This document shows, piece after piece, positions 40,580 through 51,925 of a stretch of 64,000 nucleotides of DNA; position 1 is the first letter of the stretch, and every line of letters starts with the position of its first letter. Origin of the DNA: Phaeosaccion multiseriatum (lineage: Eukaryota; Protista; Ochrophyta, other classes); NCBI GenBank assembly GCA_965112735.1, contig OZ218951.1, forward strand, positions 5,642,001 through 5,706,000, in the 5' to 3' direction. Below the pieces are notes generated by a model. The model saw only the letters and a list, made by a program, of their open reading frames with translations. It was not told where the DNA came from and searched no databases. Position numbers and translations under genes: made by a program.

Positions 40580-41388
40580 GGAGAGAGGAGGAGAGGTGTA
40601 CAGGTACAGGGGAAAGGGCGGGGGGCAGGAGGGAGATGAGGGGTTCAGAGGAGCAACTTTGTCGAGTTATAGGAATCAACCTTAAGAATTACGTATGCGT
40701 GTGTGTGTGTGTGTGTCCCAGAGGAGCGGCCAGGGCGAGGGGTGTATGGGGATGAAGGAAGGGAGGAAAGAAGGGAGGGGGGGAGGAAGGAACGTTTGGG
40801 GTCTATGGAAATGGCGGACGAAGGGCCACCCCATCTATGGCTGTGCTGTTTACGGACCACACACCATGACACACCATGAAAACAACACGTGTTGGGTCTT
40901 CGACTTTCAAGAGAGAAGTTCGGGCCGCGCAGGCCCCACACAAGGGGGGGGTCTACCACTTGGGGTCTACCACTTGGGGTCTACGCTTGCAAGTGGCCGG
41001 GGGAACGGTGTTGATTATTTTTTTTTAATTAAAATTAAAAATAATAATTTATAATTTATAGCAAAATTAATTATTGCAAAAATTATCATCAAAATAATGA
41101 GAAGCGCAGACACAATCATGTAGCAACGAAGGAGACCGATGCCACCACCACAACGGGTGGAAGCCAGGGCAAGGTTGGACCCTCCTGAGTCTTCAGACGC
41201 TGTTCCTTTTGGAGCAAGCACAGAAGCTTCGATGTCAAAGGGGGGGGGGAAATGACAAGGTCGCGTACACTGAAAACTGAAGACTGCGCCATCTGCGTCT
41301 GCTCGGAGCATAAGAGAGAGCCCATGAAAGTCAGCCATGCTCGTCGTGACGTCATGCTCTTCCGCTCCACCTCCCCCGCTGCGCTTGC

Positions 41389-49220: not shown

Positions 49221-49622
49221 GATCCCTTGATACGATAGCAAAGGTGTTCCATTACGGGAATATGATTCGTTCGAGCGTGCCTCTCTCTCTCAAGCTGCTC
49301 CACGCCGTCGGGCGACACGCATCGGCATGGATTGTCGCTCCTCCCTCATGTTTGCACTCATTTACCCGTGTCCGTCAATCCGTCGCTTCCCCTCTGTGAG
49401 CTTTGCAACACTCCTCCTCTTCTCCTTGCCCCACCAGCGAGCGAGCAGAAAGGCCCACTCGCCGCCCTGTCCTGTGCCTTGTCTGTCGATGTCTGTCTGT
49501 CTACCGATCGACAGGGACAGAACAGGCACAGCGGCGAGAGGGGGTGTGGGTAAGGAGCGAAGGGCTGCCATCCGTGCGTGCGGAGAAGGGGGCAGACACA
49601 GGAAAGCTGGTGCATTGCATAC

Positions 49623-49660
49623 TGTCTCAGTGATCAAGGGTGGTGTTTAAAAACACCAGT
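49623..49660 (-). promoter_or_regulatory. H2B 3' histone-type stem-loop + downstream CACTGAGACA element
   Basis: Minus strand ACT-GGTGTT-TTTA-AACACC-ACCC-TTGAT-CACTGAGACA; matches the H2A 3' element. Confidence 0.8.
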
Positions 49661-49726
49661 GTGTTGGTTCTTGTTCGTCGTGCGTGCGGCAGTGGGCCGC
49701 CGACGAGACCAAAAAAGCCAGGCTCC

Positions 49727-50358
49727 TTAAGTGCTGGTGAACTTGGTGACGGCCTTGGTGCCCTCCGACACGGCGTGCTTGGCCAGCTCACCGGGGAGCA
49801 TGAGGCGGACGGCGGTCTGGATCTCCCTGGAGGAGAGGGTGGACTTCTTGTTGTAGCGGGTGAGCTTGCCGGCCTCGGAGGCGATGCGCTCGAACACGTC
49901 GTTGATGAAGGAGTTCATGATGGACATGCCCCTCTTGGAGATTCCGGTGTCGGGGTGCACCTGCTTGAGCACCTTGTAGATGTAGGAGCTGTCATGTGTT
50001 GTGCGGGGGTGGGGTGGGGGAAGGGGGGGGAGAGGGGAGAGGGGTTGGTGTGGTGTTGCTGCTTTGAGCAAGTGCCTTCTCCCTCCTCAGAGAGGGAGCC
50101 TGTCTAGGTAGGTAAGCCGCCCCGCCCCCCCTTTCTCCTCCTCAGACAGGGAGCCTGTCTTAGGTAGGCAGTAGCCGCCCCCCCTTCCTCTCCGCCCCGT
50201 CCCTCCCGGCTCTCTCTCTCCAAATCAAAGGCAGCCCCGCTTTCCCGCCTGCTCTCCTTCCCGCACCTGTAGCTCTCAGTCCTCTTGGACCTCTTCTTCT
50301 TGCCGTCCCCAGCCTTCTTGGGAGTCTTGGCGCTCTTCTTTGCGGGAGTCTTAGCCAT
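49727..50358 (-). CDS. H2B: Histone H2B (exons 50358-50267, 49988-49727)
   Basis: MAKTPAKK...[31 protein letters not shown]...[15 protein letters not shown]; one phase-2 GT-AG intron. Confidence 0.97.
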
Positions 50359-50453
50359 GGTGGAGAGAGTGCTTCTTCTGGAGGGAAGGAGAGGGGGTGG
50401 TGTTGTGACAGCAGTCGAGCATCTCACAGCCCCATCACAGGAATGTCGAGATA

Positions 50454-50576
50454 CGCGCCAAAAACACTTCCGGGTCGTAATACGCGCGAATTCACAGGCC
50501 GAAAGTAACGGCAGCGCGCGGCTCGCGGGAATAGCCCCAGGGGGGGACGGGCGAAGGGGGAATGGGATTTTCGCGC
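50454..50576. promoter_or_regulatory. Bidirectional H2B/H2A promoter with E2F-like sites
   Basis: CGCGCCAAAA (50454), CGCGCGAA (50483), CGCGGGAA (50524) and TTTTCGCGC (50568) resemble TTTSSCGC. Confidence 0.45.
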
Positions 50577-50637
50577 TCGGCTGCAGGGGCCCTCACACAA
50601 ACAGCTTTGCTTCGCTTAAAGCAAGAGTACTGCCACC

Positions 50638-51018
50638 ATGTCTGGAAAGGGAAAGGGAGGTCGAGGAGATGGGAAGAAGTCTACGAGCAGCAGTGCCAAG
50701 GCGGGCCTGCAGTTCCCCGTGGCGCGTATGGGCCGCTACCTCAAGGTCGGGCGCTACGCCCAGCGCACCGGAGCCGGAGCACCCGTGTACATGGCCGCCG
50801 TGCTCGAGTACCTGTGCGCCGAGATCCTGGAGCTGGCCGGCAACGCCGCCAGGGACAACAAGAAGAGCCGCATCATTCCCCGCCACATCCAGCTGGCCGT
50901 GAGGAACGATGAGGAGCTCAACAAGCTGTTGGGCCAGGTCACCATCGCCTCCGGCGGTGTGCTGCCCAACATCCACGCTGTGCTTCTGCCCAAGAAGACC
51001 AAGTCTGCCAAGAAGTAA
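50638..51018 (+). CDS. H2A: Histone H2A (canonical type, intronless)
   Basis: [10 protein letters not shown]...[10 protein letters not shown]...[15 protein letters not shown]...[20 protein letters not shown]. Confidence 0.98.
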
Positions 51019-51112
51019 AGCAGCCTTTGCTCTTTGCAGCACGGCCCTCGTCCACTGCTCGAGAGAGCACCGGGGGAGCCTGCTTCTCGCGTCGACGACA
51101 CAACACAACCAA

Positions 51113-51148
51113 ACTGGTGTTTCTTAACACCACCCTCACACTGAGACA
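51113..51148 (+). promoter_or_regulatory. H2A 3' histone-type stem-loop + downstream CACTGAGACA element
   Basis: ACT-GGTGTT-TCTT-AACACC-ACCC-TCA-CACTGAGACA. Confidence 0.8.
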
Positions 51149-51925
51149 CAAACTATTATCCAACGCCGCAACTTCCTCTGCCTGCCCCTCCCTCTCTCTC
51201 GACTCCCAGTCGAGGGAGGAGAAAGGGGATGGGTTGCCGAGGTGGGCAGAACGGGTCGCAGGAGGGGAGAATGAGAAGGGGGTGTGGTAAGGAGCGAAAT
51301 CTCGTCCTGATCCCCTCGCCGCTCTTGCCTTGTTGCTTCTCTCTGCCTCTCTCCTCTGTAACAGCCAATATGCTCTTTCCTCCTGCTCTCTCTCTGCTCA
51401 CACAACCCCTCCCTCTTGATTGACCATCGCCCAAGTGGGACGGACGGCGGGCGGTGGGACAGGCTCTGACAAAGGACAGCGCATTCTGGAGGGTCGGGAC
51501 ACCTCTTCGCTGTAGTGAGCGGAATATGTGTAACTTATGTGCCAAGTGACTACCTAATCTAACCCCCGCTCAGAGAGCCTCCCCTGCTCTACCGGCATCA
51601 GGGCACTTTGAAGTAAAAGAGTGCTGTCTGCTCGGCAGCACTCGAAGGTCGCTTCATGAGCCCTGTCGTTCTCCCGTCAGAGCATTCGTGGTGCCTCCCT
51701 CACCGCCCCAAACCTGAGGCAGGCTTCCAGGGTCGGCTCCAGCAGGCAGCAAGGGCAGGAAGGGTCAACCACCTGTCCGCATGGTATACCTTCGTCAACA
51801 CCTCCTTCCCAGCCTGAGGTGTGTGCTGTTCACACACTGGAGCCCGTCTGTCCCGGTGAGCCCTCCAAGGACGCTCACTGCGACACGGCGGTCCCTCCCA
51901 TGGTATGCTAGCACCACACCCTCTG

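Follow-up and report, generated by a model that had tools for sequence, protein, structure and literature searches.

A histone-type stem-loop and a downstream purine-core box at the 3' ends of a divergent algal H2A/H2B gene pair

In animal histone pre-mRNA, SLBP binds a hairpin and the U7 snRNA pairs with the histone downstream element (HDE). U7 was considered restricted to animals by Marz et al. (PMC5054213). Physarum polycephalum has a histone stem-loop, a purine-rich HDE, SLBP and LSm10/LSm11, and no U7 was found there (PMC8600027). According to Zhao, Bond and Ni Leathlobhair (2026 preprint), the stem-loops of stramenopile histone genes are less conserved and sit at a greater distance from the stop codon (10.64898/2026.10.14.759114). 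The accessible sections of that preprint report SLBP homologues in many protists, stramenopiles included, as well as homologues of LSM10/LSM11 in stramenopiles, Ectocarpus among them. The only U7-like RNA that these sections name outside animals is that of Rozella, and they name no stramenopile U7 (10.64898/2026.10.14.759114). As far as the available text of these surveys extends, the partner proteins of U7 are thus found far outside animals and the RNA itself is not, the U7-like RNA of Rozella excepted. The initial annotation of the present locus treated U7 as not established outside animals. This view needs amending for the RNA reported from Rozella in the accessible part of the preprint (10.64898/2026.10.14.759114). 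With reports on stramenopiles and Physarum already in print, the underlying idea is also less novel than that annotation assumed.

A fixed-distance box of the form YYGRAR, which we describe below, appears not yet to be in print for ochrophytes, as judged from the accessible text of these sources. The HDE criterion in the available sections of the preprint is the presence of AAA or AAGA, with no fixed-distance YYGRAR box (10.64898/2026.10.14.759114). The Physarum genes resemble the present ones in being non-animal, in combining a stem-loop with a purine-rich HDE-like box, and in the intron carried by some histone genes (PMC8600027). Physarum belongs to the Amoebozoa though, whereas the present locus is from a stramenopile, its transcripts also carry AAUAAA-like signals, and a positional box consensus as given here was not defined for it (PMC8600027). 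Divergently paired histone genes with mRNAs ending in stem-loops are further described for Chlamydomonas and Volvox, according to the available portion of PMC13525598, which cites Fabry et al. 1995. These green-algal 3' palindromes share with our locus the algal setting and the divergent pairing, but come from an unrelated lineage and are likened here by their description in that portion of the text (PMC13525598).

The window, meaning the whole 64-kb stretch of DNA that was analysed, contains one pair of divergently transcribed histone genes, H2A and H2B. Both genes carry the same succession of elements past the stop codon. The features of the pair are as follows.

50638-51018, + strand: histone H2A coding sequence, a single exon encoding 126 amino acids (open reading frame and homology search)
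51100-51114, + strand: AC-rich leader ACAACACAACCAAAC, 5' of the H2A stem-loop
51115-51135, + strand: H2A stem-loop U GGUGUU UCUU AACACC A with ACCC tail, 6-bp core stem at 51116-51131
51116-51135, + strand, in parts: stem GGTGTT (51116-51121), loop TCTT, stem AACACC (51126-51131) and ACCC (51132-51135), followed by the spacer TCA
51139-51148, + strand: H2A downstream box CACTGAGACA, purine core GAGA starting 12 nt after the stem
50359-50637: divergent promoter region common to H2A and H2B, 279 bp between the start codons
50267-50358, - strand: histone H2B exon 1 (read from the sequence and the list of open reading frames)
49989-50266, - strand: H2B intron of 278 nt, GT...AG (read from the same sources)
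49727-49988, - strand: H2B exon 2 with the stop codon at 49729-49727 (open reading frame; splice acceptor read from the sequence)
49659-49675, - strand: AC-rich leader AAGAACCAACACAC, 5' of the H2B stem-loop
49638-49658, - strand: H2B stem-loop U GGUGUU UUUA AACACC A with ACCC tail, 6-bp core stem at 49642-49657
49641-49638, - strand: ACCC of the H2B stem-loop, followed by the spacer TTGAT
49623-49632, - strand: H2B downstream box CACTGAGACA, purine core GAGA starting 14 nt after the stem

The encoded H2A has a canonical C-terminus without an SQ motif. The best named match in the protein homology search is H2A of Tribonema minus (92% identity); Vaucheria, Phaeothamnion and brown algae come next, and the matched proteins carry the Pfam domains PF00125 and PF16211. 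These matches place the alga among the ochrophyte stramenopiles. The exact H2A protein of the window is absent from the contig index. The H2B intron splits a serine codon after ...RTESY, and the H2B of Discosporangium is by eye near-identical to the part encoded by exon 2. In Tribonema, Phaeothamnion and Discosporangium, the retrieved H2B genes were each called with one exon, in contrast to the intron-containing gene of the window. The intron itself contains a tandem duplication of about 55 nt, visible as a direct repeat of AGGGAGCCTGTCT at 50093-50105 and 50148-50160.

The initial annotation placed the stem-loops about 70-100 nt past the stop codons, and described both as GGTGTT-N4-AACACC with ACCC, followed by an identical CACTGAGACA 3-5 nt further on. 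We recover this arrangement in full, with spacers of 3 nt (H2A) and 5 nt (H2B) and distances from the stop codon of 97 nt for H2A and 69 nt for H2B. The stem-loop pattern occurs at only two places in the 64 kb when one mismatch or fewer is allowed, against 0.07 expected by chance. The exact 10-mer, also written CACUGAGACA, likewise occurs at only two places in the 64 kb, both behind histone genes. Matches to the 10-mer are no longer rare if one mismatch is tolerated, so that its weight rests on its position. The stem had been given as 6 bp with a 4-nt loop; the core stem is indeed present in both genes, and each can extend to 7 bp through a U-A pair. RNA folding yields 7-bp/4-nt hairpins for both RNAs, with a minimum free energy of -10.5 kcal/mol and z = -3.15 for H2A. 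The annotation had further considered the rest of the two 3' UTRs unrelated. Loops, spacer lengths and flanks do differ, but an AC-rich leader of about 22 nt is alike in both genes and a CT-rich block recurs. This second common block, CTTCCTSTGYCTGCCCC, lies 15-22 nt past the 10-mer (51171-51187 on the + strand and 49589-49607 on the - strand). It may represent CT-rich sequence of low complexity, or else an additional signal, for instance for termination.

Both hairpins have the structure of a histone 3' UTR stem-loop, defined by a 6-bp stem, a U-rich loop of 4 nt, a GG...CC base, a U-A pair at the top, an A/C-rich 5' flank, ACC(C) as 3' flank, and a core histone gene whose 3' UTR contains it. 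The box lies where an HDE is expected, as a purine-rich element about 10-20 nt 3' of the stem-loop that is common to the H2A and H2B genes of the window. A local search with the Rfam model RF00032 (Histone3) singled out exactly these two hairpins in the window, with 30.5 bits (E = 2.6e-06) for H2A and 28.7 bits (E = 1.2e-05) for H2B. The gathering cut-off of RF00032 is 34 bits, and at gathering threshold Rfam has no match anywhere in the window. Both hairpins fall below the cut-off and are thus divergent members of RF00032 by that measure. The near-threshold matches, taken together with compensatory stem changes in relatives, uphold the reading of the hairpin as a histone-type 3' stem-loop.

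The signal resembles its metazoan counterpart (RF00032) in the 6-bp stem starting with GG, the U-A top pair and a loop of 4 nt whose first and third positions are U. The A/C-rich 5' flank, the ACCC 3' flank and the purine core about 10-15 nt after the stem are also shared, as is the divergent pairing of H2A and H2B. The stem sequence differs, being GGUGUU in the window and GGCYCU in metazoans. The stem-loops also lie further from the stop codon, at 69-97 nt compared with the 25-60 nt given for animals in the accessible sections of the preprint (10.64898/2026.10.14.759114). The box of the window lineage is GAGA or GGAA preceded by YY, in contrast to AAAGAG in animals, and the distance between stem and box differs by 2 nt between the H2A and H2B genes of the window. 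H2B departs from animal replication-dependent histone genes in having an intron, and the likeness to the animal genes is known here from DNA sequence.

The two-part layout is not special to the window pair. Loci of relatives were retrieved via H2A proteins and comprise Tribonema minus (L001, L004 and L005), Phaeothamnion confervicola (L002), Discosporangium mesarthrocarpum (L003) and a Logan contig (L006). The same type of hairpin is found in 12 of the 14 histone 3' flanks of these loci, the two flanks lacking it being those of Tribonema H2A genes (L001 and L005). The hairpins of the relatives have GGUGYU or GGUAUC with compensating 3' arms, are followed by ACCC, ACCA or GCCC, and are likewise preceded by AC-rich leaders. 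Compensatory double changes affect three of the six stem pairs and pairing is 100% across the 12 flanks retrieved via proteins, a result to be read with the caveat that the relatives' hairpins were chosen because they pair. A purine box follows 4-10 nt past the tail in most of the flanks and 19 nt past it in Phaeothamnion H2B. In Tribonema H2B the tail reads ACCC tcgctcc TGAGAAAC (also written UGAGAAAC), which is very close to CUGAGAC of the window. Five genes of Discosporangium carry the boxes GAGGAAAG, GAAGAAG, GAAGG, GAGAGAGG and GAAGAAAGG.

A scan of metagenome contigs by the hairpin pattern CTGGTGTTNNNNAACACCACCC alone, imposing no requirement on the downstream sequence, added 120 loci (L007-L126). 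A histone gene ends 33-110 nt upstream on the same strand in 20 of these, and at the same offset most of the 20 have (T)GGAA(A)C or GGAGAGAC. The scan selects contigs by sequence pattern, whatever their taxonomic origin. A Gibbs motif search over 33 non-redundant flanks, the window pair included, returned YYGRAR with a log-likelihood ratio (LLR) of 130, compared with 108 +/- 4 (maximum 117) for shuffled sequences. The distal part of the same 33 flanks also yielded a motif above the shuffles, with an LLR of 120. The sequence signal alone is thus modest, and it is the positional clustering that carries the argument. The motif starts at +9 to +13 after the stem in 21 of the 33 flanks. Leaving out both window sequences, GRAR starts behind the 31 other histone-linked stem-loops number 27 at +10 to +15, compared with about 11 in the 31-position stretch between +26 and +56. 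The HDE-like two-part layout proposed by the initial annotation is therefore real in position and composition and recurs in relatives, as the purine-core box is found at the same place behind 31 other histone genes. On the sequence comparison, the 10-mer of the window is the local form of a wider YYGRAR-type element.

Some metagenome sequences fit the pattern less well. The contigs encoding the closest metagenome H2A proteins (P0020 and P0015) have a GGTGAA/TTCACC hairpin with ACAC and a less clear box, and brown-alga-like contigs have degenerate hairpins. The roughly 100 non-histone matches of the hairpin scan were considered as a control and dropped, since they form one homologous family with a periodic composition of its own. 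They are copies of one conserved coding sequence, probably bacterial in origin, and not chance matches. Shuffles and distal positions served as controls instead.

The layout matches the processing signal of animal histone pre-mRNA, and we therefore take the hairpin and the box to be a signal for 3'-end formation. We suggest a two-part signal of replication-type histone genes. The first part would be the histone stem-loop, composed of an AC-rich leader, a 6-7 bp stem starting with GG, a 4-nt loop rich in U, and ACCC as its tail, and most likely bound by an SLBP-type protein. The second part would be the purine-core box, located about 10-15 nt after the stem and past a pyrimidine-rich spacer. 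Endonucleolytic cleavage would most likely occur a few nt after ACCC, between hairpin and box, by a CPSF73-type nuclease positioned jointly by the protein on the stem-loop and the factor on the box. The resulting mRNAs would end at the hairpin, with no poly(A) tail. The box would most plausibly be read by a U7-like Sm/Lsm10/Lsm11 snRNP pairing through a UGUCUCAG-like 5' region. Our confidence differs among these components. The stem-loop is very probably a functional histone 3' signal and the downstream box is likely a functional positional element. A guide RNA as the reader of the box is a tentative proposal, to which we assign somewhat less than an even chance. The specific version in which ochrophytes use a U7-like snRNP, whose 5' end (about UGUCUCAG here) pairs with the YYGRAR box and sets the cleavage site, is a shade more doubtful still. 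Taken as a whole, we consider the explanation evenly poised between right and wrong.

Searches for the putative guide RNA covered the window and 0.83 Mb of fetched loci. Sm-type sites have the form RUUUNUCYNG or are AAUUUUUGG-like, and the anti-box complementary to YYGRAR is YUYCRR, or UGUCUCAG in the window species. Neither the window nor the fetched loci contain a match to U7 (RF00066), and the searches for U7 and the anti-box returned chance matches only, in bacterial contigs. The small RNA envisaged by the initial annotation, joining an anti-box to an Sm-like site, therefore found no candidate in this material. Only one RNA run was identified, an oligo-dT metatranscriptome in which 5% of the sampled words occur. 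Contigs L130-L138 were considered as transcripts and rejected, because their sequence resembles genomic DNA and lacks an A tail. A tRNA-like stretch with the T-arm motif GGTTCGATTCCC lies within about 60 nt of the H2A hairpin in L130 (2990-3055) and also in L131-L137. The lineage of L130 is a marine protist encoding the H2A protein P0078, and ARAGORN calls no tRNA in that stretch.

The stem-loop might direct 3'-end formation together with a box that is read by a protein instead of a guide RNA, for instance a zinc-finger or CstF64-like factor, or the box might act to pause or terminate Pol II. With YYGRAR, the conserved core spans just about 6 nt and varies within a genome as much as between genomes; across the five Discosporangium genes, the box looks as a degenerate protein site would. 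Such a reader is also favored by the lack of a U7-like RNA in the window and the 0.83 Mb of fetched loci, and by the failure of the published Physarum search to find U7 (PMC8600027). Animal HDEs are equally degenerate though, and U7 nevertheless reads them. The stretch of 10/10 identity that the two window genes share is moreover longer than typical protein sites and would allow a good duplex. We know of no role for LSM10/LSM11 beyond the U7 snRNP. The stramenopile homologues of these proteins, reported in the accessible part of the preprint, hence argue against a purely protein-based reader (10.64898/2026.10.14.759114). We consider a protein reader rather unlikely, though the strongest of the competing accounts.

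Alternatively, the hairpin could serve mRNA stability or translation, or mark an alternative end, while cleavage and polyadenylation of most mRNAs take place further downstream and the box forms part of a poly(A) signal context. Histone mRNAs of Physarum do combine a stem-loop with a poly(A) signal (PMC8600027). The accessible sections of the preprint describe stramenopile stem-loops as more distant from the stop codon and less well conserved (10.64898/2026.10.14.759114), in line with the 69 and 97 nt measured here. The H2B intron and the occurrence of the relatives' histone proteins in poly(A)-selected MMETSP transcriptome sets point in the same direction. Reading by eye, however, we found that the roughly 400 nt downstream of H2A and of H2B contain no AATAAA, though stramenopile poly(A) signals are poorly defined. 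The fixed distance between hairpin and box in many species fits better with a measured cleavage between the two elements, and we rate downstream polyadenylation as unlikely, slightly below a protein reader. The common 10-mer could finally be without function, either by chance or because one 3' end was once copied onto the other. The leader similarity and the further CT-rich block common to both 3' regions would fit such copying, and a direct repeat of 24-27 nt that brackets the pair points, with the likeness of the leaders, to a history of duplication. The 10-mer is also not rare in the window once one mismatch is allowed. Against this stand the differences in loop, spacer length and flanks next to a box identical at 10/10 positions, and the purine core at the same offset behind 31 histone genes of other organisms. 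Given the cross-species positional enrichment, we regard a functionless remnant as very improbable.

The two-part signal read by a guide RNA, if true, would extend guide-RNA-dependent histone 3' processing to SAR and push its origin near the last eukaryotic common ancestor. If a protein reads the box instead, the two-part layout would be older than the RNA guide. The YYGRAR consensus and its distance from the stem provide a concrete handle for finding the missing guide RNA in genomes and small-RNA data. The box could also serve as an annotation marker in algae to tell replication-type histone genes from variants.

The 279-bp promoter contains two sites of the form TTTSSCGC, which we take to be the E2F site, in opposite orientation (50455-50462 on the - strand and 50569-50576 on the + strand). 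The whole 64 kb contains 11 such sites, these two included. Their placement suggests S-phase control of the H2A/H2B pair. A further TTTSSCGC site lies inside the H2B intron at 50241-50248. The H2A/H2B cassette is flanked by a near-identical direct repeat of 24-27 nt, GAGGGGGTGTGG(G)TAAGGAGCGAA, at 49538-49561 and 51275-51298 (+ strand). The two copies are about 1.74 kb apart, 62 nt past the H2B box and 127 nt past the H2A box. Both have the same orientation and thus stand outside the mirror-symmetric signals of the genes. The repeat may mark a junction at which the histone-pair unit was duplicated or inserted. Elsewhere in the window, a long near-perfect inverted-repeat hairpin at 1508-1736 gives weak, symmetric matches to many plant miRNA-precursor models on both strands, all far under the gathering scores. 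A strongly AT-rich island (TTATTTTGATGATAATTTTTGCAATAATTAATTTTG...) is located at about 41,000-41,103 on the - strand of the window, which has a G+C content of 61%, and could be an insert of organellar DNA or the remains of a transposon.
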